Of a stretch of DNA of 64,000 nt, positions 422-62,166 are shown piece by piece (the stretch's first letter is position 1; every line of letters begins with the position of its first letter). The DNA lies in assembly GCF_001194135.2 (NCBI RefSeq), contig NC_068996.1, positions 6,530,175 to 6,594,174 on the forward strand, read 5' to 3'. This stretch comes from Octopus bimaculoides (taxonomy: Eukaryota). Under the pieces are notes generated by a model. It made no database searches. It saw only the letters and a program-made list of their open reading frames with translations, and was not told where the DNA came from. The translations under genes were made by a program, and so were the position numbers.

Positions 422-805
422 CTGTAATTCACAAACATTTTATTAAACTTCACATTTCCTTTTAAGCTTATTGGTTGCCAATTACCATTATGTGTGAGTA
501 TCTTGTGTAAAATCTGAATTCTAAGAGTATTAACACCAGTCTGTGTAGGTAATAATCATGAAAGAAAGGGAGTGATGGCTACAGTCAAATGACTGGAACA
601 AGTAAAGAGAGAAAGAATAGTATTCCTATTTACAATGATAATGACATTGATAATAATGATGATCATCATAATGATGAAGCAGTGAGAAGAATAGGACATG
701 GGGAAATAACGAGTAAGCCAAAAGCTGATGATGAAGACTATGTTGTTTAGATTATTTACATTATTTACATTTGACAGATATTTGTCCTCATCTTGTTTGT
801 TGTTT

Positions 806-850
806 ACACAACGTTTCGACTGATATACCCTCCAGCCTTCATCAGGTGTC
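806..850 (-). ncRNA. Minimal type I hammerhead ribozyme motif (PLE-associated, dimer type)
   Basis: Sense sequence GACAC-CUGAUGA-A-GGCUG-GAGGGUAUAU-CAGUC-GAAA-CGUU-GUGU: intact core, 5-bp stem II (one G-U), stem I ACAC/GUGU, palindromic AACGUU in place of stem III. One extra A after A9. Confidence 0.75.
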
Positions 851-933
851 TTGGGGAAATTTTGAACCTGGGTTCTCATTCCTAGGGTATTTTTTGATAT
901 TATTATTATTATTATTATTATTGTTATTATTCA

Positions 934-1005
934 GGTCACTGCCTGGAATTGAACTTGGAATTTTGGGGTTAGTAGCCCACGCTTTGAACCACTACACCAT
1001 ATGCC
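934..1005 (-). promoter_or_regulatory. tRNA-like Pol III cassette (A/B boxes) inside the PLE 3' region
   Basis: TGGTGTAGTGG (A box) and AAGTTCAATTCC (B box) with tRNA spacing, plus an anticodon-loop-like CT-ACT-AA. The same cassette recurs at 50907-50980. Confidence 0.65.
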
Positions 1006-1964
1006 TGTGGGCAATTATGGAGTGAATTTTAGGGCTTATAAATCTAATATTTTTCTACCCTTCCTTAATACCGGTTCCCATATGCTACTCATATCTTTAC
1101 TTGGTCTGCTTAGGAGGTTGTTGTGTCCTAGCATATGTACTGCTTCTTTTAGTTTTCATATATTCCAGTGATGTTCTCTGTCTATTATTTTAACTTCATC
1201 CCACAAGGGGGAGGTGGTTTCCATTGTTCCATACATGGTCAGCTATAACCGATTTATCAATATCTCCCCGTGTCACAGCTTTGCAATGTTTGTCTACCCT
1301 TATTTTGAGGAGGCAGCACGTTTTGCCTTTGTACAACCTACCACTGCTGCAACATTTCCATCAAGTTTCTTATTGGTATACCAGTGCATTCTTTTAGATG
1401 GGTGTCTGTCACTAGTTTTTCTTGAATCACCAATGGTGCTTCACCAGTTGAGACTTTGGTGAACAGATTTATCACATCTAGACTCACTATCTGGTTGGAT
1501 TCAATGGGAGTATCCTTGATCAATTCTGTGAAGTGGGTGGAATTCTTCACATACGATGTTGACTTTCCTGCTAATGGACTGATTCTATGTTGTTTAGTTA
1601 TAAGTCAGTCCCCTGACTGGATCAGGCCTATAACCAAATTGGTTCCAACCACGACCACCCAATTTTCCTCTTGTGTGTAACTTGGACTACATAGTCTAAT
1701 GTCTCTCTTTCTCTAAAGTATTAAGGTATAATTTGAGGAAATTTTAGCTGCTATTGGCTATTTCTACCAGGCTGAGCAACCACATAGAGGTTCCTTTGGT
1801 AACTTGTGATTATTTCTTATCCTGGATAGATATCATTTTCTTTTATCTAAGACAATACCATGCAATTCAAGGAAGGTGTGGCTGTTATTTCAGGCAGGTA
1901 GACCAACTGCATATAACTGTTCGGTTTGGTTTGGTTTCAGTAGAGAATATTATTCTTAAAGTAG

Positions 1965-2185: not shown

Positions 2186-4518
2186 CCCTTTAGCATTCAT
2201 ATTATTCTGTCATATATATTGCTTATTATATATGTTATTATATATATTATCTAAATCACAAGGGAAAGTTGTGTGAGCATGTGTCTGCGTGAATGACATA
2301 GTGTACCAATATCGAAAGATTGCTGGCTCAGGCATTGTAGCTTAATTGAGACTGTTTATAACGAGTCAAGAAGGATGCATTAATCATGATGATTAATCAC
2401 TTATCCATAGAATCTATCAGCAACCTTTTGAACAACTGTAATACATACGAGTCATGGGCATGCCACAAATTTTTTCTTTTTTTTTTAGGTGTGTAAGGAA
2501 ATGATTGAAATTATTTAGAAAACTTGAATAACTGTATGTATTTTTCTTGCAATGAAGTGCAACGTGTTCCCCTATCTTTGTTTTAAGACAATTTTAATAC
2601 TTTTAAAAAGTTGATAGTGTTCTGTAACACTTTTAGCATTTTATTTAATGTGGTGTGAATAAAAAAAAACGTTTGAAAAATTGTTGACCTAAATTCTAGA
2701 TAAACATTCAAATTTCACTGGAGTTTGGATCTGAACGTGAACACCATAGCACAACAAGTAACTTTCAATTGTTGCTTCAGTTTTGGTTTTATGAGACAAA
2801 ATAATCGAGGTTAAACCTGCTGGATTACTCTGCCAACATGGGCATTATAAGGTCAGATTGTACACCTGATATTGTCATGTGTTCCTGAGCAAAGCACATA
2901 ACTGTATTTGTTCCAGTTGGGTTGATTGACAGAAAAATAAATAGATAAATAAATAAATAAAAGGTGGGGTGGAACCACTTCATGGTTTAGTGATTATTAT
3001 TAGGAAGAGCAATGAGTATACATGAAAAAAAAAAACAAGAAAAAATCATCTATGTAAGCCTAGAAGAATAGGCATAAAAAGTATATAAAAAAAGACAAAA
3101 GGACTTTAGTATTTGTTCTTTTTAGTCAGACTTGGTGGATTATCTCAATAGCTTCTGCTTGTTATTCAAAATAATGTTTATTCACATTCATATTTTAAAC
3201 AATTGCTCTATCAGAAGAACAAACTCCATTACACTTGACCTCCTAGTAACAGTTGCTAAGTATCCCTCAAATCATACTGTACCATCATAAAGTAACAAAG
3301 GACAGGTTGGACAGGGTAGTCTTAAACAACAGCAATGATCAAAATCTGTTCCAACAAGGTTGGACTAAGACTAAATAATAACAAAATTACTAACAACACC
3401 AGCAACAACCTCTAACAGTCCAAAGTAATTATATATTTATTTATCTACTGAGCACTAGCCATATTTTATCTACCTAGCTGATTGAAAGTCATTAATTTCA
3501 GTAATTAAGTTACATGATTTTTGATGATGAACATTTAACAAAATTTAAATAAATATAAATAATGCCATGTAAAAAAATATGACAGATGGCATAAATATTT
3601 GCTTTATTAAATGTAGCCAGTATGAAACTTGAAATGTGGTTCCAAAGTGGTTACAAGTCTTTAAAAGAAATTCATAGAAAGTATATTAGGAAAAACTTCA
3701 AACAAAATTCCTTTGATGTCATTGTTATATGTTGAAACCATCAAAATGTATTCTTTGATCTTGGCCAAAAATCAGAAACAATTGTTTTCCTCTAAATATT
3801 AATTTTAAAATGTCTACTTTTTAATTTTAACTTCATAATTAAAAAAAAATTTAACTTCATAATTTTTTTCAAAAACAGTCACACACACACATTCTCATCA
3901 TTAAGTTTCATACATATCAATTAATCTCAAAAGTAATTACTTCTTAATCAAAATATATTTAAAACAGAGAGAGAGAGAGTGTATGTGTGTTCACTTAGGC
4001 AAAGTAGTATTAATAACCTGGTATTAGAACTCAACATATATANNNNNNNNNNNNNNNNNNNNNNNNNNNNNNNNNNNNNNNNNNNNNNNNNNNNNNNNNN
4101 NNNNNNNNNNNNNNNNNNNNNNNNNNNNNNNNNNNNNNNNNNNNNNNNNNNNNNNNNNNNNNNNNNNNNNNNNNNNNNNNNNNNNNNNNNNNNNNNNNNN
4201 NNNNNNNNNNNNNNNNNNNNNNNNNNNNNNNNNNNNNNNNNNNNNNNNNNNNNNNNNNNNNNNNNNNNNNNNNNNNNNNNNNNNNNNNNNNNNNNNNNNN
4301 NNNNNNNNNNNNNNNNNNNNNNNNNNNNNNNNNNNNNNNNNNNNNNNNNNNNNNNNNNNNNNNNNNNNNNNNNNNNNNNNNNNNNNNNNNNNNNNNNNNN
4401 NNNNNNNNNNNNNNNNNNNNNNNNNNNNNNNNNNNNNNNNNNNNNNNNNNNNNNNNNNNNNNNNNNNNNNNNNNNNNNNNNNNNNNNNNNNNNNNNNNNN
4501 NNNNNNNNNNNNNNNNNT

Positions 4519-8857: not shown

Positions 8858-9296
8858 GGCTGGCACCCATGCCAACGTCGTCTCCTTCATTGGACACGAA
8901 ACTCGGCTTGCGAAGACCTGTTGAGGCAAGCGAAAGCGAAGCGAAATCCTGATGGCCCCTCTGTCCTGGCACTTGTGCCGGTGGCACGTGTAAAGACATT
9001 CGAGCGAGATCGTTGCCAGTGCCGCTGGACTGGCTCCTGTGCAGGTAGCACGTAAGAGACACCATTTCGAGCGTGGCCGTTGCCAGTACCGCCTGACTGG
9101 CCTTCGTGCCGGTGGCACGTAAAAGCACCCACTACACTCTCTGAGTGGTTGGCATTAGCAAGAGCATCCAGCTGTAGAAACTCTGCCAAATCAGATTGGA
9201 GCCTGGTGTAGCCATCTGGTTCACCAGTCCTCAGTCAAATCGTCCAACCCATGCTAGCATGGAAAGCGGACGTTAAACGATGATGATGATGATGAT
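8858..9296 (+). mobile_element. RTE LINE 3' end, 5'-truncated, (GAT)n tail
   Basis: Ends cccatgctagcatggaaagcggacgttaaacgatgatgat; CpGs retained, so young. Confidence 0.9.
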
Positions 9297-10775
9297 CTGG
9301 GTAATAACTTCATAACATGCATCTAAAAGCTCCTATACTGTTATTAGCCACCATATACCATCATACAGCAAGGTTACCCCTCCATTTATATATGTGAGAG
9401 TATACACACACACACACATGGCAGGCTTGTGTACAATTTCTGTCTATCAAATTCACTCAAAAGGCATTTGTCGACCCAAGGCTATAACAGAAGACAATTA
9501 TTCAAGGTGTTGTATACTGGGACTGAACCCAAAACCATGTGGTTGCAAAGCAAGATTCTTAACATGGCCATCATTGCACCTTCAATTGCACAGCTATGCC
9601 CTTTAAACTGTTGTGTTTTTTTGTTTTGTTTTTCATTCCAGACATTCGTATTACATGTGCAACCCCTCACAATAAAACTAATTTGTCTGTAAGATTGTAG
9701 CACGTACTTAATCACTGAAGATGCTTGTTGATATTCATTTTTCTAGATTGGATAATGATCCTTCTTTGGAAGTTAATTTTCTTTCTGTGGCCATAGCTTC
9801 TTCATTCTTCAACATATCAGTTAAAAGGATGAAAGCAGTATTGGTTCAGAATATCATTCTGTATATCTTACTTAATGTGGTATACAACAGAAATTCACAA
9901 AACTGCAGTATTTGTCTTGTGAAAGCTTCATGTATAGATGTCATCATCATCCACTTTCCATGTTGGCATGGGTTGAATCATTTGACAGGAGCTGGCTCGG
10001 CAGAAGATTGCACCAGGCTTCAGTGTCTGTTTTGGCATGGCTTTTTACGGTTGGATGCCCTTCCAAATGCCAACCACTTTACAGTGTGAACCGAAGGCAC
10101 AGAAGTGTGTTGGTAGAGATGAAAAAGCATCCAGCAGCAGTGATGAAATTGTTAAAGACACAAAAATTTAGATTTAGCAATTCCATTGCCACTACTGAAC
10201 AATTTTCATCTGCTACTGGAGACCTTACTTTATAGCCGTAAAACAATGACTCGATAATATATATATGCTTGTACTTGTCATTAACCTTAACCCGTTTTTC
10301 AAACAGGAGATTCCATACATCTTTGAAGGTGTAAAACCAAGGGATAATGTCTCAGAGAAGTGCAAATGTAAAGGAACGCCCTTACAAACACCATTAAGCA
10401 CATTTTTGCTTTTTTTCTCATTCTGGCTTTTTTCCTCATTTTCGTCTGTTTTCTCTCCTCATTCCTTTCTGTAGATTCAAAACATTTTCCCTGAGCATCA
10501 AACTAAGACAACTTCTTTACTATTCCCTCACCTATCTCTGTCTTTTGCATTTTGTACAATTTTAAACCACATTTATATATATATGTACACAAGCCTGTCG
10601 TGTGTGTGTGTGTGTGTGTGTATACTCTCACAAATATAAATGGAGGGGTAACTCTGCTGTATGATGGGATATGATGGCTGATAACAGTATAGGAGCTTTT
10701 AGATGCGTTAGGAGGTTATTACCCAGATAATATTGAATATTTGTGTGTGTGTGTGTATGTGTGTGTGTGTGTGTG

Positions 10776-11032: not shown

Positions 11033-12339
11033 CATATATATATATATATATATAATGCTAGAGTTTGAGGTTAATGGAGCATGAAAGTGAAGNNNNNNNN
11101 NNNNNNNNNNNNNNNNNNNNNNNNNNNNNNNNNNNNNNNNNNNNNNNNNNNNNNNNNNNNNNNNNNNNNNNNNNNNNNNNNNNNNNNNNNNNNNNNNNNN
11201 NNNNNNNNNNNNNNNNNNNNNNNNNNNNNNNNNNNNNNNNNNNNNNNNNNNNNNNNNNNNNNNNNNNNNNNNNNNNNNNNNNNNNNNNNNNNNNNNNNNN
11301 NNNNNNNNNNNNNNNNNNNNNNNNNNNNNNNNNNNNNNNNNNNNNNNNNNNNNATATATATATATATATATATATATATAAGATATTTGTCTACACAATG
11401 GGAGTGAACTCAAAACCACTTTTTTTTTGATAAGTATACTTTTTAACCATATGGCCATCCTTGTAACCATAAATTATTTACTTCTAGGCAAATCTTTCAC
11501 TCTTCGATCACAATGTCTTCCTAAATAGAAAAATTTACCTTCTCATTGAGTGTAATCCACACTCATTTACTATTGCTAGTGTGTGTGTGTGTGTGTTTGT
11601 GTGCATGCATAATCATCTCTGTAAAGTATACTATTGTTACATCATATATATAGATCCTGAATGATGAAACCTACTGACCTTGCAGGTCAGAAAATATATA
11701 AACTACACAGTGAGAGAAAAAATAAATATCTGTAAAATCCAGCATAGAAGTAAGTGAACAGGAGTGAACTTAAAATGGTGAATGAGGTTGATCCTATTCC
11801 CATGTAGAATTCTTTTTTTTATAAATAACTCAGTTGCAAAATAGACCATCCCCGCTTCCATTTGTGCCAACTATTTAATTTATTAGACAGTTGCTTTCTG
11901 TGGTTTGCGTCTGACAGAAATATCTTTTCAAAGACATGTTAAAAACGCAATATATCTATCTATCTACATATAAGTAAATAAATCAAAGCAAGACAAACAT
12001 TGTCCCAACACTGACCTACAAGAATGCCAGATGTATTTTAACTTCCTTGTGTGTTGTCAATGATGTGTACTCATCAGTCACATGACTAGACAAAATCCAT
12101 TTCCCTCTTATATAAAGAAAACATTGAATAATACATTCATTGGTACTGTGGAAAGCTGAACCACAAAGTTATAGGGGTGTAAACAAACCAACCCAAATTG
12201 TTAAGCAGTGGCAGAGGAGAAACACAAAGATACCAAGATAGGCTTCTTTCAGTTTTCATTTTGTCAGCCTGGGAATATTAGAGTACAAAACACTTGCCCA
12301 TACAATGGGACTGAAACCAAAACGAAATGNNNNNNNNNN

Positions 12340-24217: not shown

Positions 24218-26764
24218 NNNNNNNNNNNNNNNNNNNNNNNNNNNNNNNNNNNNNNNNNNNNNNNNNNNNNNNNNNNNNNNNNNNNNNNNNNNNNNNNNNN
24301 NNNNNNNNNNNNNNNNNNNNNNNNNNNNNNNNNNNNNNNNNNNNNNNNNNNNNNNNNNNNNNNNNNNNNNNNNNNNNNNNNNNNNNNNNNNNNNNNNNNN
24401 NNNNNNNNNNNNNNNNNNNNNNNNNNNNNNNNNNNNNNNNNNNNNNNNNNNNNNNNNNNNNNNNNNNNNNNNNNNNNNNNNNNNNNNNNNNNNNNNNNNN
24501 NNNNNNNNNNNNNNNNNNNNNNNNNNNNNNNNNNNNNNNNNNNNNNNNNNNNNNNNNNNNNNNNNNNNNNNNNTATATATATATATATATATATGCTTAT
24601 CTTTTGTTTATAACAAAAAAAAAGAGAAGAGGGGAAAGGGGGGGGAGGAAGTTGCATGTATAATACATAACTTAGAAGCAGTGCGTACCAACACACATGA
24701 GATTGAGACATAGCCGACCTCATGCACTTCTCATGAGGAATCCCGGAAGGAGCTTCGTGAGACCACAACTGAGACACTTCCGAAAAAAAGAAAAGCCGTT
24801 GGAAAGCTGATTATAGTAGCGACTGTAGAAAATTTGCCTCAACAAATTCTATCTGACCCAAGCAAGCATGGAAAAGCATACATTAACCGATGATGATGTA
24901 TCTGTGTTCATGTGTGATCATTGTTTTTTTAACCTTCTCTTTCCCATGCTTGTATGAGTTGGACTTGTTGAGGCAGGTTTTCTATGGGTGGATGCCCTTC
25001 TTGTTGCATCTGTATACAAGTAATGTAATATTTTCTTTATGACCAGTTATGTTTTCATGGAAGGCTGGAAATGAAGGACACAGCTTGCATGACTGTGACA
25101 CTTATTTACAACTATTGCACGATATCAAGTTTAAAAGACAGTAACACACATGCATGCACATACAAATATATATTGTGATTCCTTCAGTTTCCACTCAGAA
25201 AGCTTTGGTCGATCCGGGGATATAGTAGATACTTGCATATGACACCATGCATCAGTAGAACCATGTCATTGATAGGCTAACTTCTTACCACACAGCCACA
25301 CTTGTACCTTTACATATAACACACAGAAAATTATTTTAAAGTGTCTCAAGACTAAACCCTCATTTCCATGAAGTTTAAGTGATTGAAACCACAAAATGTC
25401 CAACTAAGCAAGAATGCTAATTCTTGGAGCAATAACCCCTCCTTAGTTGCTCATCAAATTACCCCTGAGTGAACTGATGCATCATGAAATTAAATGTCTC
25501 ACTCTAAGACACAAAGCACCACTTAATCCGAGAATTAAATTCATAATCTTAACATCATTAATCTCACACTAACCATTAGGCCACATGCTAACACACACAT
25601 CCCCATATATGTAAACATATTTTCTGGCATGGTTGAATGATTGAGAAAGTTTGTTTGAAATCATGAAATCGTGTGTTCAATCCCACAACATAACATCTTG
25701 GGCAAGTGTCTTTCATATAGCCACAGATCAATTCAAATCCTGTGAGTGAAACTGAGTAGATGGAAACTATGATGAAGCCTATCAGATGGATTACACCACG
25801 GATTCAAAAATTCAGCCCTGACATGAACCATGTCACACTGATTCTACCTGAGAATTATTATGTTAATAGTACATGTGTCTGGGGAGTACTCAGCTACTTA
25901 GATTAATTTAAAAGATAGGATGACTAGTTTATTGAATGTTTGTTGTTAAAACTAACACAACAGTTGTGCGTGTGTGTATATATGTATACACACACATATA
26001 TTTTATGTAGATAGGGTTATAATCCAAGCTGTGTCCTCAAAATGCAAATCTGTAAAATAATGTTTGAAGTTGTTAGCAGATTCCAATTTATCATCTATGT
26101 TGGAGTTGTTTTTTTTTAATCAAAGAATTATGCTTTCCATCACATATACGTAAGAAATGAACTTGGTCTATATATTAACAGTTTTATATATTCTGCCTTT
26201 TGTTGGTAAAAGAATAACCTTTAGCGAAACATCCAAATGTATTCTTCCTCATTTAAGAGGTTGAACAGCAATAACTGCTTAAAATGAAATATAATCAAGT
26301 AGATTATATTGGAGCAGAGTAAAATGTAGATAAGGTTACAATGCAACATGTGTCCTCATGAAGCCTATCTGTATAATCCAGTACTCAAAATTGTATGAGG
26401 CATGCATCAGAGTTGAAAAATACTGGGAAATAGTTTTTGAAAAGTAAATTACATATCAAAACAGGAAATTGGAAACATTTTTTAGGTATTATTTATTCAC
26501 CATTACACAAACTTTATTCTCCTTTCTATCTAAAAGACTCCTAATCGATGACTATAAATTAAGGCTTCATCCAAATGTAAATGTTCCATTATTTAATTCT
26601 CTGTGTGAAGAATTTCTAATAGGAGATATACGTGTTTCTCCTACATGTACAATTTTATAACTTTTATTTGCAAATGAAACATGTGTAATGGTAAATAAAT
26701 AAGACCAAAAATGTTTTCTAATTTCTTGTTTTGGAGATTATTCCCACCATTTACTGATTATTCC

Positions 26765-33766: not shown

Positions 33767-34042
33767 NNNNNNNNNNNNNNNNNNNNNNNNNNNNNNNNNN
33801 NNNNNNNNNNNNNNNNNNNNNNNNNNNNNNNNNNNNNNNNNNNNNNNNNNNNNNNNNNNNNNNNNNNNNNNNNNNNNNNNNNNNNNNNNNNNNNNNNNNN
33901 NNNNNNNNNNNNNNNNNNNNNNNNNNNNNNNNNNNNNNNNNNNNNNNNNNNNNNNNNNNNNNNNNNNNNNNNNNNNNNNNNNNNNNNNNNNNNNNNNNNN
34001 NNNNNNNNNNNNNNNNNNNNNNNNNNNNNNNNNNNNNNNNNN

Positions 34043-34083
<41 letters not shown>

Positions 34084-36176: not shown

Positions 36177-36222
<46 letters not shown>

Positions 36223-36739
36223 NNNNNNNNNNNNNNNNNNNNNNNNNNNNNNNNNNNNNNNNNNNNNNNNNNNNNNNNNNNNNNNNNNNNNNNNNNNNNN
36301 NNNNNNNNNNNNNNNNNNNNNNNNNNNNNNNNNNNNNNNNNNNNNNNNNNNNNNNNNNNNNNNNNNNNNNNNNNNNNNNNNNNNNNNNNNNNNNNNNNNN
36401 NNNNNNNNNNNNNNNNNNNNNNNNNNNNNNNNNNNNNNNNNNNNNNNNNNNNNNNNNNNNNNNNNNNNNNNNNNNNNNNNNNNNNNNNNNNNNNNNNNNN
36501 NNNNNNNNNNNNNNNNNNNNNNNNNNNNNNNNNNNNNNNNNNNNNNNNNNNNNNNNNNNNNNNNNNNNNNNNNNNNNNNNNNNNNNNNNNNNNNNNNNNN
36601 NNNNNAAGGAAATATTTACAAGCTAAATAAAGTATTTTGTTTTGTTTGTCATTTCCTCTATGAAGCTTTTTATCATCGCTTCTTTCCTTTCCTTTCTTTA
36701 TGACTAAATGAAAATAATTTTGTGTAAGTATATTTAGTT

Positions 36740-39317: not shown

Positions 39318-39972
39318 TCATCGTCGTCGTTTAACGTCCGCTTTCCATGCTGGCGTGGGTTGGACGATTTGACTGAGGACTGGTGAGCCAGAAGGCTGCA
39401 CCAGGCTCCAATCTGATCTGGCAAAGTTTCTACAGCTGGATGCCCTTCCTAACGCCAACCACTCCGATAGTGTAGTGGGTTCTTTTACGTGCCACTGGCA
39501 CGAGGGCCAGTCAGGCGGTACTGGCAACGACCACGCTCAAAAGGTGTTTTTACGTGCTACCTGCATGGGAGCCTATCTGGCGGCACTGGCAACGACCACG
39601 CTCGAATGTTGTTTTTCCTGTGCCAGTAAGGCGACGCTGGCACCGATCACGCTCGAATGGTGCTTTTTACGTGCCATTGGCATGGAAGCCAGTCAGCGAC
39701 CCTGGCAACAATCACGCTCAGATGGTACTTTTAACGTTCCACTGGCATGAGTGCCAATCAGGCGGTACTGTCATCAGCCACGTCAGCGATTTTGATTTCA
39801 CTTGTCTCAACAGGTCTCCGCAAGAAAAGTTTATTGTCCAATGAATGAAGGGTACTCATAAGTGGGCTGGTTATACACCACTGGCATAGGCCACGGGTTA
39901 TGGTCTCACTTGACTTGTTGGGTCTTCTCAAGCACAGCATATCTCCAAAGGTCTCGATCACTAGTCATTATC
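39318..39972 (-). mobile_element. RTE LINE 3' UTR + ORF end
   Basis: Reverse complement of 18720-19376 with an extra internal subrepeat. Confidence 0.88.
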
Positions 39973-48809: not shown

Positions 48810-49210
48810 CTCTTTTACTTGTTTGAGTCATTTGACTGCGGCCATGCTGGGGCACCACCTTTTAGTCGAGCAAATCGACCCCAGGACTTATTCATTGGAT
48901 GCCTAGTACTTATTCTATCGGTCTCTTTTGCCAAACCACTAAATTACGGGGAAGTAAACACACCAGCATCGGTTGTCAAGTGAAGTTGGGGGGACAAACA
49001 CAGACACACAAACATACACACATACATATATATATATACATATATACGACAGGCTTCTTTCAGTTTCTGTCTACCAAATCCACTCACAAGGCTTTGGTTG
49101 GCCCGAGGCTATAGTAGAAGACACTTGCCCAAGGTGCCACACAGTGGAACTGAACCCAGAACCATGTGGTTGGTAAGCAAGCTACTTACCACACAGCCAC
49201 TCCTGTGCCT
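48810..49210 (-). mobile_element. Near full-length young SINE family B
   Basis: Head (to 49205), internal (TA/CA)n and 3' body ending (TCTTTTAC)n. Confidence 0.88.
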
Positions 49211-50856
49211 ACTTGCTAACAGTCCTGTCAGCTTGCCACTTTTAAACACTAAAATATTGTTATTGAAAATAAAAATCCATTTCAACGATCATCTTAATCT
49301 TTTTTTGTTTTCCTTATAGAGAACAAGTTATATTTTACCACTTGAAAACTCAGTCATGAATTCATGAATAACTCCTTGATTTTTTTTTCCCCCCATTTCA
49401 CTTTATCCATTTTGTGAACCTTATTCTTTTCTGAAGCTTACCTGGCAAAGTCCTTTCTGAACCATTGCAAAATCAAAGAGAAGTAGAAGTCTATCAAAGT
49501 CATGCATTAATTTGCATCCATCCAAACAGCATCCAATCAATGCCATACCATGTCTGTGGCTCACAAAAAAAAAAACGTGAGTAAAAAAAACCCCACATTC
49601 AGGCAGTCATAAAGTGCCTTTTGAGTGGGTGCACTCATGCGTGCATCGCATGTTGTTCAGCAAAACAGATTGTGCTACCAAGCATATGATGATATAGTGC
49701 AGTAACTCTATATCTATAAAATATTTTGAAAGATATAAGAAACACCTTTGTTACTGCCTTGTGTACTTTTGGCTCTTGTATTTATAGTATACAATACTTT
49801 TAATTTTGTTACTTGAGTTATCAAATAAGTTTACTAACTTATAAAACAGTGTGTGCTTCATTTTTGCCTCTTCAGCAACAGCACGATATTTTTAGTATTC
49901 ACTCTCTCATTAGTTAAGCACATTAACTTTTGACAATTTGCTGTGCTTGAGAAGACATGCCAAGCTAAATAAAATCATGGCCATCCATACCTACAGGCAT
50001 GTCCTTTACAGCTATAACTCTGCTTCCCCTCCCACATGCATAATTCTGTTCTCTGGCAAAACTTACCCACAACCATCTCCCCAGACCCCCACCATCCAGT
50101 GTTGGACCCTCCAGTTCAACATCACTTGCTATCGATAAATATCTTCCCTCATACTCTTATGGTACACCTCCTCTGTTGCCTCCATGCTACTTATACTCCT
50201 CCCTATTCCCTGTGGGTAGGCCCTCTACCTCTCACTCTGTTTATCTTTCTCTCTCTCTCTCCTACCTCCCTCTGCTTCTTTGTTCTACTGGGGTAGCCAA
50301 GTATTTCCTCTGTAGAAAGACACCTGTGCCTGTTTCTCTACAATACTCCAACCTCTTGCCTGACACATGGTCACTTCTCTCAGTTCCTCTCCCTCTCTCA
50401 GCTGAAACATCCCTGTCTTACAAGCCACTTAGCAACCTCAAGGGTACTGGTGCGATGTAAAAGGTGCCCATGTTGGTACCAAGTAAAATGCACCCATGCT
50501 GGCACCACATAAAGCGCATCCATGCCAGTACCTTATAAAAAGCACTCCTGTTGGTGCCACATAAAAAGCACCCATGCTGGCAACATGTAAAAAGCACCCA
50601 TGCTAGCGCCACGTACACAAGAAAACCTGTGTCAGGGCCATGTAAAAAAGCACCTGTGTAGGCCCCATGTAAAAAAAAATACCAAGCTGATGCCAAGTAA
50701 AAAGCACCCATGCTGGCCTCACATAACAAGCACCAAGTACTCTCTGTAATGTGATTGGTGTTAGAAAGGGTATCCAGCCATAGAAATCATGCCAAACAGA
50801 TGACAGGGGCCTGATGTAGCTCTCTGGTTTGCCAGCTCCTGTAAAACTGTCGAACC

Positions 50857-51153
50857 GATTCTATATTTAAGAGATGAGGAATTATGTACATTATTTACAT
50901 TTGACAGGCATATGGCATAGTGGTTAAAAGCGCGGGCTACTAACCCCAAGATTCTGAGTTCAATTCCAGGTAGTAACCTGGATAATAATAACAATAATAA
51001 TAATAATAACATCGAAAATACCGTAGGAATGAGAACCCAGGTTTGAAGTTTCCCCACAACACCTGATGATGAAGGCTGGAGTGTATATCAGCCGAAACGT
51101 TGTGTTAACAACAAATAAGATGAGGACAAATATCTGTCAAATGTAAATAATGT
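50857..51153 (+). mobile_element. Short PLE-derived element (tRNA-like head + (AAT)n + hammerhead) with an inverted 5' tail piece
   Basis: Highly similar to the reverse complement of 751-1005; 20-bp inverted match 50888-50907 / 51134-51153; approximately 9-bp target duplication tgtcgaacc / tgtccaacc. Confidence 0.85.
51058..51106 (+). ncRNA. Hammerhead ribozyme motif with a 3-nt core duplication
   Basis: AACAC-CUGAUGA-UGAA-GGCUG-GAGUGUAUAU-CAGCC-GAAA-CGUU-GUGUU. Confidence 0.65.
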
Positions 51154-51605
51154 CCAACCAATGCTAGCATGGAATGTGGACATTAAAAAAATGATGATAA
51201 TGATCACCATCATCATCATCATCATCATCATCTGGTGAATTCAGCCAATATTGAACAAAACAAAGTCTATACAATATTCCACAGACACCTAAGTATAAAT
51301 ATATGACTCACAGGGTGACATTCAATCAACATTCAGTTTGGTTAATATCATGTTTCTATGAATGTATCTAGGGTGTCGAAAGATTCATGACTGTGTATAT
51401 AGGTTGAAAATCCTTTATCCAAAATCCCAAAATCTGATACCCACCAGATCAGAAAGTTTTTGGGATGTTAGTGGATTTTATATATAGGATACTGATAAGT
51501 TGCTAAACTTTGCAGCTGACTGTGATATTTGCAATGACATACCTTCTCTCTCAAGTTTCTCAAACCTGATGTAGTTCTTATGTCTGGGTCTGTAGATATC
51601 TTCGT

Positions 51606-52966: not shown

Positions 52967-53280
52967 CATCATCATCATCACCGTCGTTTAACGTCTGCTT
53001 TCCATGCTAGCATGGGTTGGACGATTTGACTGAGGACTGGTGAAACCGGATGGCTACACCAGGCTCCAATCTGATCTGGCAGAGTTTCTACAGCTGGATG
53101 CCCTTCCTAACGCCAACCACTCAGAGAGTGTAGTGGGTGCTTTTTACGTGCCACCGGCACAAAGGCCAATCAGGCGGTACTGGCAACGGCCATGCTCAAA
53201 ATGGTGTATTTTATGTTCCACCCGCACAAGAGCCAGTCCAGGGGCACTGGCAACGATCTCGCTCGAAAGTCCTTATACAT
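52967..53280 (-). mobile_element. Young RTE 3' end
   Basis: (CAT)n tail and 3' UTR subrepeats. Confidence 0.9.
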
Positions 53281-53429
53281 GCTGCGGGCACAATATATGC
53301 ATATATATGTACGTGCTGTGCATGCGTATGTACATGTGGATAAACTTGCTCTTGTGGGTGTACATATCATGGTAGAAAACAAAACAAATGTATATATTTC
53401 ATTACTGTTTATGTGAGCATGTGTGTATA

Positions 53430-55940: not shown

Positions 55941-57334
55941 GTAGTAGTCCTAGAAATGTCATTTAGACCACGTGTGTTTATTTACATCACTTCGGCATTT
56001 TCCATAAAAAGTGTTGAGTTAGGGAAGTGGGAAAGGATGCGAAAGAAATAGAGAGAGCACGATTTCTTTTGAAGTTGGCATGCTACTTACCACAGTGGTT
56101 GTGGTAAGCAGCAAACAACAATCATAAACAAAAAAAAAACATACCTTCTCTCTCTCTCTCTAAAGAAATAAAAATATAAGATTTCAGCTTTCAAATGACA
56201 TATGAANNNNNNNNNNNNNNNNNNNNNNNNNNNNNNNNNNNNNNNNNNNNNNNNNNNNNNNNNNNNNNNNNNNNNNNNNNNNNNNNNNNNNNNNNNNNNN
56301 NNNNNNNNNNNNNNNNNNNNNNNNNNNNNNNNNNNNNNNNNNNNNNNNNNNNNNNNNNNNNNNNNNNNNNNNNNNNNNNNNNNNNNNNNNNNNNNNNNNN
56401 NNNNNNNNNNNNNNNNNNNNNNNNNNNNNNNNNNNNNNNNNNNNNNNNNNNNNNNNNNNNNNNNNNNNNNNNNNNNNNNNNNNNNNNNNNNNNNNNNNNN
56501 NNNNNNNNNNNNNNNNNNNNNNNNNNNNNNNNNNNNNNNNNNNNNNNNNNNNNNNNNNNNNNNNNNNNNNNNNNNNNNNNNNNNNNNNNNNNNNNNNNNN
56601 NNNNNNNNNNNNNNNNNNNNNNNNNNNNNNNNNNNNNNNNNNNNNNNNNNNNNNNNNNNNNNNNNNNNNNNNNNNNNNNNNNNNNNNNNNNNNNNNNNNN
56701 NNNNNNNNNNNNNNNNNNNNNNNNNNNNNNNNNNNNNNNNNNNNNNNNNNNNNNNNNNNNNNNNNNNNNNNNNNNNNNNNNNNNNNNNNNNNNNNNNNNN
56801 NNNNNNNNNNNNNNNNNNNNNNNNNNNNNNNNNNNNNNNNNNNNNNNNNNNNNNNNNNNNNNNNNNNNNNNNNNNNNNNNNNNNNNNNNNNNNNNNNNNN
56901 NNNNNNNNNNNNNNNNNNNNNNNNNNNNNNNNNNNNNNNNNNNNNNNNNNNNNNNNNNNNNNNNNNNNNNNNNNNNNNNNNNNNNNNNNNNNNNNNNNNN
57001 NNNNNNNNNNNNNNNNNNNNNNNNNNNNNNNNNNNNNNNNNNNNNNNNNNNNNNNNNNNNNNNNNNNNNNNNNNNNNNNNNNNNNNNNNNNNNNNNNNNN
57101 NNNNNNNNNNNNNNNNNNNNNNNNNNNNNNNNNNNNNNNNNNNNNNNNNNNNNNNNNNNNNNNNNNNNNNNNNNNNNNNNNNNAGTAATAACGGTGAGAG
57201 GCGAAGGACGAGTAACAAGAGATAGAGAGAGAGAGAGAAGTAGTGACAGGTAGAGGTGAAGAACAGTAGAGAGAAGAATGAGAGGGGGAGATAGAAATAG
57301 AGAGAGTCGCGTTAGAAAAAGAGTTAAAACTTAC

Positions 57335-61833: not shown

Positions 61834-62166
61834 GCATGTGCATGCATGTATGTATAGTGAGAGCACATGATCTAGTGGTTAGGGTGTTGCACTCACAACC
61901 ATAAGATCATAGTTTCAATTCCCAGGCAGGTCAGTGCATTGTGTTCTTGATAAAACACTTCATTTTATGTTGTTCTGTAATCTCTTTGATATCTAATGCA
62001 TGGTACACCATGCACCTGTTCAGGCAACATCAGTTTGATGAAGTGGGTGAGCTAATGTGCAGCACAAGCATTTGATCACTATAAGCAAATCATTTGAGCA
62101 GGTTATTCATCAAGAAACTACAGAACCCTATTTTTTTAATTGAGAGACTACTATTAATGTTTATCA

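Follow-up and report, generated by a model that had tools for sequence, protein, structure and literature searches.

A short non-coding insertion in the octopus genome that matches a PLE 3' UTR and may represent a PLE-mobilised SINE

The insertion, its target site and its two arms

The window, by which we mean the whole 64-kb stretch of octopus DNA analysed here, contains one Penelope-like element (PLE) and, as detected by BLAST, two copies of a short module, one lying directly behind the remains of the PLE reading frame and the other in a separate insertion at 50857-51150 (Table 1). The insertion is 294 bp long, non-coding and bounded on either side by a 9-bp target-site duplication (TSD). 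Searches with nhmmer profiles of the head and of the tail of the module revealed no further copies in the window. The surrounding DNA is AT-rich, with dense repeats and many N gaps, most of which are bounded by (TA)n or (ATAC)-type microsatellites in a manner typical of short-read assembly, and repeats may be under-represented in a window gapped in this way.

The target of the insertion was the 3' end of a high-copy, SINE-like repeat of ~330 bp, with a shared 5' boundary, a (GAT)n end and an interior built of tandem units of ~35 bp (..ggcacgtaaaagcac..), of which more than 10 other copies are found within the window. Across the target site, 11 uninterrupted copies of this repeat within the window have the sequence ...tcaaactgtccaacccatgc.... 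The bounds of the insert were placed at 50857 and 51150 because alignment of the host repeat puts tgtc(g/c)aacc on both flanks. A first-pass annotation made from the letters of the window had pointed to a duplication of approximately 9 bp at this site, and comparison with the 11 intact host copies bears it out; its statement that the short copy has no coding sequence likewise stands, the ORFs of the insert being spurious and having zero protein homologues. Its label for the target, RTE tail, is a putative one. The ORF at 771-1025, which spans the element, gave no match when used as a query on the protein collection. The start of the TSD, tgtcca, resembles the start of the optional tail extension described below, tgtaca (51145-51156 compared with 50885-50893), and the position of the 3' junction is therefore uncertain by a few bases; microhomology between target and template at this junction is possible.

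The insert consists of a left, inverted arm of 47 bp and a right, direct arm of 247 bp (50904-51150), the latter a short, non-coding unit that comprises, in order, a tRNA-like head, an (AAT)n microsatellite, a conserved block, a hammerhead and a tail. Positions 50885-50907 are the reverse complement of 51134-51156 at 22 of 23 bases, which confirms the earlier observation that the copy is preceded by an inverted piece of its own 3' end. The inverted arm has a tail extension of ~32 nt that the direct arm lacks; this extension, gtacataattcctcatctcttaaatatagaatc, is also found behind the tail of the window PLE, of the copy in a Logan contig (L001) and of two O. vulgaris copies (L005). At the junction of the arms, the tetranucleotide ACAG is common to both, so that the start of the direct arm can only be placed within 4 nt. 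The corresponding sequence of the window PLE at the start of its head is cccACAGGCAT (1010-1001, minus strand).

Table 1. Coordinates of the features described in the text; positions of arm inner ends are relative to tRNA position +1
Feature	Sequence	Position	Strand	Remarks
PLE 3' UTR module: head, (AAT)n, hammerhead, tail	Window	758-1008	-	Hammerhead at 813-845
Degenerate PLE ORF	Window	1040-1583	-	tblastn with P0005: aa 100-178, then 439-537
Host repeat interrupted by the insert	Window	50440-50856 and 51151-51230		
Host repeat, examples of other copies	Window	8966-9297, 15499-15823, 19042-19373, 39318-39609, 52968-53293		
Left TSD, tgtcgaacc	Window	50848-50856	.	Intact host-repeat copies have tgtccaacc once
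Outer portion of the inverted arm: the optional ~32-nt PLE tail extension gtacataattcctcatctcttaaatatagaatc in reverse complement	Window	50857-50888	-	96% identity to L005 11802-11848
Inner portion of the inverted arm: final ~19 nt of the element body in reverse complement, ctgtcaaatgtaaataatg	Window	50889-50903	-	Runs on into ACAG, 50904-50907
Junction microhomology, ACAG	Window	50904-50907	+	Inverted-arm end equals head positions -2 to +2
tRNA-like head	Window	50906-50982	+	Box A 50913-50923; box B 50957-50967
Internal (AAT)n microsatellite	Window	50983-51009	+	
Conserved middle block (..taggaatgagaacccaggtt..)	Window	51010-51057	+	
Minimal type-I hammerhead (putative)	Window	51058-51106	+	Architecture as in PMC4209133
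3' tail, ending at the upstream one of two alternative 3' ends (..ctgtcaaatgtaaataa)	Window	51107-51150	+	
Right TSD, tgtccaacc	Window	51151-51159	.	Placed by comparison with intact host-repeat copies
N-run assembly gaps	Window	4060-4500, 11100-11400, 23140-23520, 24340-24690, 33770-34050, 36220-36600, 56200-57190		
Direct arm, inner end	Window	-2 to +2		Ambiguous through ACAG microhomology
Left arm of head-to-head pair, inner end	O. vulgaris L005-B	-2		
Right arm of head-to-head pair, inner end	O. vulgaris L005-B	+1		
Inverted arm, inner end	L010	-3/-4		Complete head-to-tail arm with extension, lacking only the hammerhead segment

The parent PLE and the composition of its 3' UTR

The reading frame of the window PLE is a piece of the RT N-terminus fused to remnants of a GIY-YIG endonuclease, with stops and frameshifts, and an internal deletion near ~1350 (minus strand) joins the part matching amino acids 100-178 of the relative P0005 straight to that matching amino acid 439 onward. 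PLE relatives were identified in protein libraries, among them P0005 itself, a protein of 545 aa that has an RT plus, at its C-terminus, a GIY-YIG endonuclease. BLAST of 50801-51220 aligned the insert with the window PLE (758-1008, minus strand) at 88% identity from 50904 to ~51151, which is the full length of the direct unit, and the similarity to the PLE does begin at the head, as had been proposed. In the PLE, the module starts ~7-10 nt past the ancestral stop codon, a TAA at 1017-1015 that follows ..ALKFTP. Given that this stop lies only ~10 nt before the head, the short element would be the whole PLE 3' UTR, and the alignment indicates that the direct unit of the insert is that 3' UTR, ~250 bp in length, in complete form.

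Relatives of the module were sought in retrieved loci that encode the PLE C-terminus, a sample of ~230 kb of relevant DNA. A homologous head was found 3' of the PLE ORF in O. vulgaris (OX597819.1; L005 10411-10640), in an ENA assembly (L006), in Logan contigs (L001, in internally deleted form) and in long contigs of ERZ21867824, which represent a diverged lineage with ~73% nucleotide identity over the ORF. The head is followed by the minimal hammerhead in the retrieved PLE 3' UTRs, the segment being absent from the mobilised L001 copy, and the distance from stop codon to head is ~10 nt in octopus copies versus ~100 nt in the ERZ21867824 lineage. Since the head follows the PLE ORF in four sources other than the window, it appears to belong to the PLE itself, as an old and integral part of the 3' UTR of this lineage and not a neighbouring SINE. 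Its conservation over diverged PLE lineages indicates, moreover, that the head is no SINE-specific addition, a point missed by the first-pass annotation. Two insertion events were found in 20 kb of O. vulgaris DNA, where the internal (AAT)n of one copy (L005 12100-13077) has expanded to ~1 kb, with other insertions breaking up the array. Two exact-pattern scans of JGI metagenomes for conserved stretches of the element returned 0 matches.

The head contains a box A (TGGCATAGTGG, 50913) and a box B (AGTTCAATTCC, 50957) at an offset of 44 nt, the spacing of class I tRNA genes, and the combined A and B box pattern has a single match in the 64-kb window compared with 0.01 expected. The A and B boxes are among the best-conserved parts of the head across relatives, and in the ERZ21867824 lineage they read TGGCGTAACGG and GGTTCAATCC, with a longer spacer. 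The Rfam tRNA model scored the head at 15 bits (E=3), no Rfam family reached its gathering score anywhere in the window, ARAGORN reported no tRNA in either the window or the retrieved loci, and the more distant head in L009 had no Rfam match. Folding of four heads produced no cloverleaf, with z-scores between -1.2 and +1.6, and on this result we abandoned the view that a tRNA-shaped RNA is what is preserved in the head. The earlier description of the head as tRNA-like is therefore upheld as regards the boxes and their spacing, but the likeness is otherwise weak, and the comparison points to promoter-like boxes, not tRNA shape, as the conserved feature. Weak matches to the head profile at 61863-61929 (plus strand) and 49139-49192 (minus strand), with E ~0.05-0.08, may be the heads of other tRNA-derived SINE families.

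The segment that follows the conserved block has the layout CTGATGA..GGCTG..CAGCC GAAAC GTT/GTG. In the predicted hammerhead, 51058-62 would pair with 51102-06 as helix I and 51074-78 with 51089-93 as helix II; the core would comprise C51063 and UGAUGA, a single A would stay unpaired between A9 and helix II, and behind GAAAC a palindromic ACGU takes the place of helix III, with the predicted cut after U51101. A minimal, dimer-dependent hammerhead variant without a closed helix III has been described for PLEs (PMC4209133). The core pattern CTGANGA..CGAAAC occurs in the window only in the two copies of the element, against 0.05 expected. The catalytic nucleotides do not vary among eight copies drawn from three sources, in which helix II is 95% paired, with one compensatory change from U-A to C-G. 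The Rfam hammerhead models gave no match even at E<=10, and a homodimer cofold of the ribozyme segment yielded only the trivial full duplex. The core of the insert carries a duplication of TGA (51064-51069) that is present in no other copy, and the ribozyme of this particular insert is probably inactive because of these 3 nt.

In two mobilised copies from different genomes, L001 1-130 and L010 18848-19106 (both minus strand), the ~75-nt hammerhead segment is gone while the head and tail are kept, which suggests that the ribozyme is dispensable in cis for insertion. The existence of these copies agrees with the finding that PLE insertion proceeds in vitro without hammerhead cleavage (PMC11167929).

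Insertion signatures and the origin of the template

PLE insertions are 5'-truncated, often have an inverted 5'-truncated copy at their 5' end, and carry an optional tail of 30-40 bp at one end (PMC8557442). In the anole, the PLE protein cuts the two target strands and extends each of them, and its RT starts at two adjacent internal sites, the sequence between which constitutes the tail (PMC11167929). In the window insert, the tailed arm begins at the downstream site, and the arm of opposite orientation begins at the upstream site and has no tail. An inverted 5' arm, spanning 50857-50907 in the window, is also present in L001, L005, L007, L009 and L010, and an extension at one end only recurs in copy A of L005 and in L010. 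The L010 locus holds a 371-bp insertion (18848-19218) of the same layout with a perfect 9-bp TSD, CCCATTGAT, and L005 copy A has the same two-arm layout with a direct arm that begins in the GIY-YIG region. The inverted arm of copy A (L005 10026-10072) has a tandem duplication of ~23 nt of the tail at the direct-arm junction. Insertion by the PLE machinery is well supported by sequence comparison, as the 9-bp TSD, the inverted arm and the one-end tail all match published PLE signatures.

Whether the start of the window copy at the head is a singular event bears on the nature of the RNA that was copied. Its 5' end coincides with the 4-nt microhomology, which alone could have fixed the junction. 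The inner end of every readable arm was scored relative to tRNA position +1 in ~10 PLE-type insertions. Four arms from three of these ~10 independent events, in three genomes, end within -4 to +2, a suggestive recurrence of the start at the head in what is a very small sample; the remaining arms end elsewhere, as tail-only pieces of 47, 55, 76, 108 and 125 nt and, in several cases, within the ORF. Taking the first event as given, the probability that 2 of the ~9 further events would fall in this 7-nt interval is P ~3e-4 if ends are uniform over 2.5 kb and P ~0.03 even with a 10-fold higher density near the 3' end. The L010 case came from an unselected flank. In L005-B, the head-to-head junction reads ccatatgcccgt joined directly to gggcatagcgg, with zero filler bases; both heads are internally deleted, and the right arm ends in the (AAT)n array, its 3' half missing. 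The presence of ends from three independent events in the same 7 nt argues against truncation at random and for a discrete short RNA template with its 5' end at the head.

On tRNA-type promoters, RNA polymerase III begins transcription ~10-11 nt 5' of box A, at a purine that follows a pyrimidine. The recurrent arm ends fall at such a purine, 10-11 nt upstream of box A and with a pyrimidine before it. No sense-strand TTTT occurs inside six copies, a result that is not significant alone, with ~0.7 expected per copy. Because the ends fall at the Pol III start distance, the boxes are conserved in heads that form no cloverleaf, and TTTT is absent, we infer that Pol III transcription of the head is the preferred source of the template.

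These observations can be assembled into a model in which a short non-coding RNA corresponding to the PLE 3' UTR module, most likely made by Pol III and mobilised by a PLE, was retrotransposed to give the insert, a reading to which we incline, if only somewhat. The template would be a short RNA consisting of the head, (AAT)n, conserved block, minimal hammerhead and tail of a cephalopod PLE 3' UTR, and its likeliest source would be a Pol III transcript, made either from a PLE copy's 3' UTR or from an earlier short copy, since the 5' end of the template sits at the Pol III start distance before box A. A PLE RT/GIY-YIG endonuclease acting in trans would recognise the 3' tail of this RNA, cut the two target strands 9 bp apart, and allow cDNA to be primed from both ends. 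One cDNA, starting at the downstream RT site and stopping after 47 nt, would give the inverted arm with its tail extension, while the other, starting at the upstream RT site and reaching the RNA 5' end at the head, would give the direct arm, the two being joined through the ACAG microhomology. The result would be a SINE whose entire sequence is nested in its autonomous partner. We infer the Pol III transcription, the mobilisation in trans and the order of strand events.

A discrete 5' end could also arise if a Pol II transcript of the PLE were cut, or its reverse transcription blocked, at the boundary between the ORF and the 3' UTR, either by an RNase P-like cleavage at the tRNA-like element or by a terminating ribosome on the stop codon. 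The octopus head lies only ~10 nt past the stop, the module is always within a PLE UTR, and ends at -4 to +2 would be explained equally well by cleavage and by transcription initiation; however, the head has neither an acceptor stem nor a cloverleaf for RNase P, the stop codon of the ERZ21867824 lineage is ~100 nt before the head and an arm still ends at the head, which speaks against a ribosome block, and what has been conserved is a pair of A and B boxes at tRNA-like spacing. We regard this origin as unlikely, although it deserves serious attention. The insert could, alternatively, be an ordinary 5'-truncated PLE copy in which truncation, or joining by microhomology, happened by chance to fall where the 3' UTR begins. 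Most PLE insertions are truncated at the 5' end and solo fragments with a hammerhead are frequent (PMC8557442, PMC4209133), ACAG is present at the arm junction, and the other truncated copies end at many places. Chance truncation is nevertheless difficult to reconcile with three events in three genomes ending in the same 7 nt, for which even the conservative estimate is low and the uniform one far smaller, and microhomology with the tail is not required for either the head-to-head junction of L005-B or the arm of L010; this explanation we hold to be distinctly improbable.

The resemblance between insert and PLE might instead be one SINE matching another, an unrelated tRNA-derived SINE having come to lie beside, or recombined with, a single PLE. 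Octopus genomes are rich in tRNA-derived SINEs (PMC8967140) and the window offers only one PLE copy for comparison, but in O. vulgaris, L006, L001 (in the deleted form) and the PLE lineage of ~73% identity the head is located at the corresponding position 3' of the stop codon, and no TSD separates the PLE ORF from the head. The specific proposal that a SINE landed next to the PLE was rejected on the conservation of the head after the ORF in these four sources, and we find the whole explanation scarcely credible.

The Pol III-based reading of the insert can be extended into a general proposal, namely that the 3' UTR of a cephalopod PLE lineage is itself a functional Pol III gene of tRNA type, that each 3'-intact insertion of the PLE seeds a potential SINE master gene, and that the short RNAs are moved by PLE enzymes, which would make this the first wholly nested PLE/SINE pair. 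We put this forward tentatively, as a real possibility but one we would not yet favour. SINEs are taught as parasites of LINEs, and we know of no SINE with a documented PLE partner. The link between a SINE and a PLE would here be readable in the sequence, from the layout shared with the PLE 3' UTR and from the PLE-type insertion scars; scars of this kind are, to our knowledge, produced by PLE enzymes only. Should the head prove to be an active Pol III promoter, a SINE would have been born inside its parent and not by fusion of a tRNA with a LINE tail, a common explanation would be available for schistosome hammerhead SINEs and animal retrozymes, and a natural template of ~250 nt would be at hand for studying PLE reverse transcription, the two RT sites and the role of the ribozyme. 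A PLE-nested SINE would also be relevant to the annotation of octopus repeats, most SINE families of octopus genomes being still unclassified (PMC13282606).

Comparison with known systems

The first-pass annotation had put forward a non-autonomous, ribozyme-bearing retroelement using PLE enzymes, as a candidate undescribed system. The non-coding, ribozyme-bearing and PLE-inserted character of the element (TSD, inverted arm, one-end tail) is supported by the present analysis, but "undescribed system" was an overstatement, as schistosome hammerhead SINEs (PMC2770079, PMC6765202) and retrozymes (PMC7229834; preprint 10.64898/2026.07.22.740005) precede it. Full-text literature searches yielded no account in which a PLE 3' UTR or pseudo-LTR contains a tRNA-like module, or in which a cephalopod SINE depends on a PLE.

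Closest in design are Sm-alpha and Sj-alpha of schistosomes, high-copy SINE-like elements that are tRNA-derived, apparently transcribed by Pol III, hammerhead-bearing and flanked by short direct repeats (PMC2770079, PMC6765202), although the likeness is architectural only. Their ribozyme is a canonical type-I hammerhead, often in tandem arrays and cut from multimers, in contrast to the minimal PLE-type hammerhead of the octopus element, whose copies are solo and have PLE-style inverted arms. Sm-alpha and Sj-alpha also have no sequence-matched autonomous partner, whereas the octopus element corresponds to the 3' UTR of an identified PLE.

Animal retrozymes are likewise non-autonomous and hammerhead-bearing, and are thought to be derivatives of PLE terminal repeats that use PLE enzymes (PMC7229834; PMC7761336; preprint 10.64898/2026.07.22.740005). 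They are arranged in tandem, head to tail, have canonical hammerheads, give rise to circular RNAs and have no described tRNA-like head; the octopus element, by contrast, has no tandem units, a minimal hammerhead and a tRNA-like head at its 5' end. No tail-to-head junction was found in the window or in the retrieved loci, and a reading of the element as a retrozyme was rejected for this lack of tandem units. Nor is the canonical type-I hammerhead of retrozymes matched, given the palindromic ACGU in place of helix III and the Rfam result described above.

Solo 5'-truncated PLE fragments share with the octopus element the same ribozyme, which lacks a helix III loop and has a single unpaired nucleotide 5' of helix II (PMC4209133), as well as the inverted arm and the optional tail of 30-40 bp (PMC8557442, PMC11167929). 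Their 5' ends are arbitrary, unlike the recurrent end of the octopus element at a Pol III-type promoter.

In LINE/SINE pairs such as UnaL2 and UnaSINE1 of the eel, the short element bears the 3' recognition sequence of its partner. The tail alone is common to the two members of such a pair, the tRNA head being foreign to the LINE, whereas both head and tail of the octopus element are contained in the candidate partner, which is a PLE and not a LINE. Sequences resembling small-RNA genes are also known from within LTRs, in Cassandra, Helenus and Ajax (PMC10886601), which likewise place a Pol III-type module in a terminal repeat region. These are non-autonomous LTR retrotransposons; the octopus module, in contrast, is located in the 3' UTR (the pseudo-LTR region) of an autonomous PLE, and it seems to define a shorter mobile unit.
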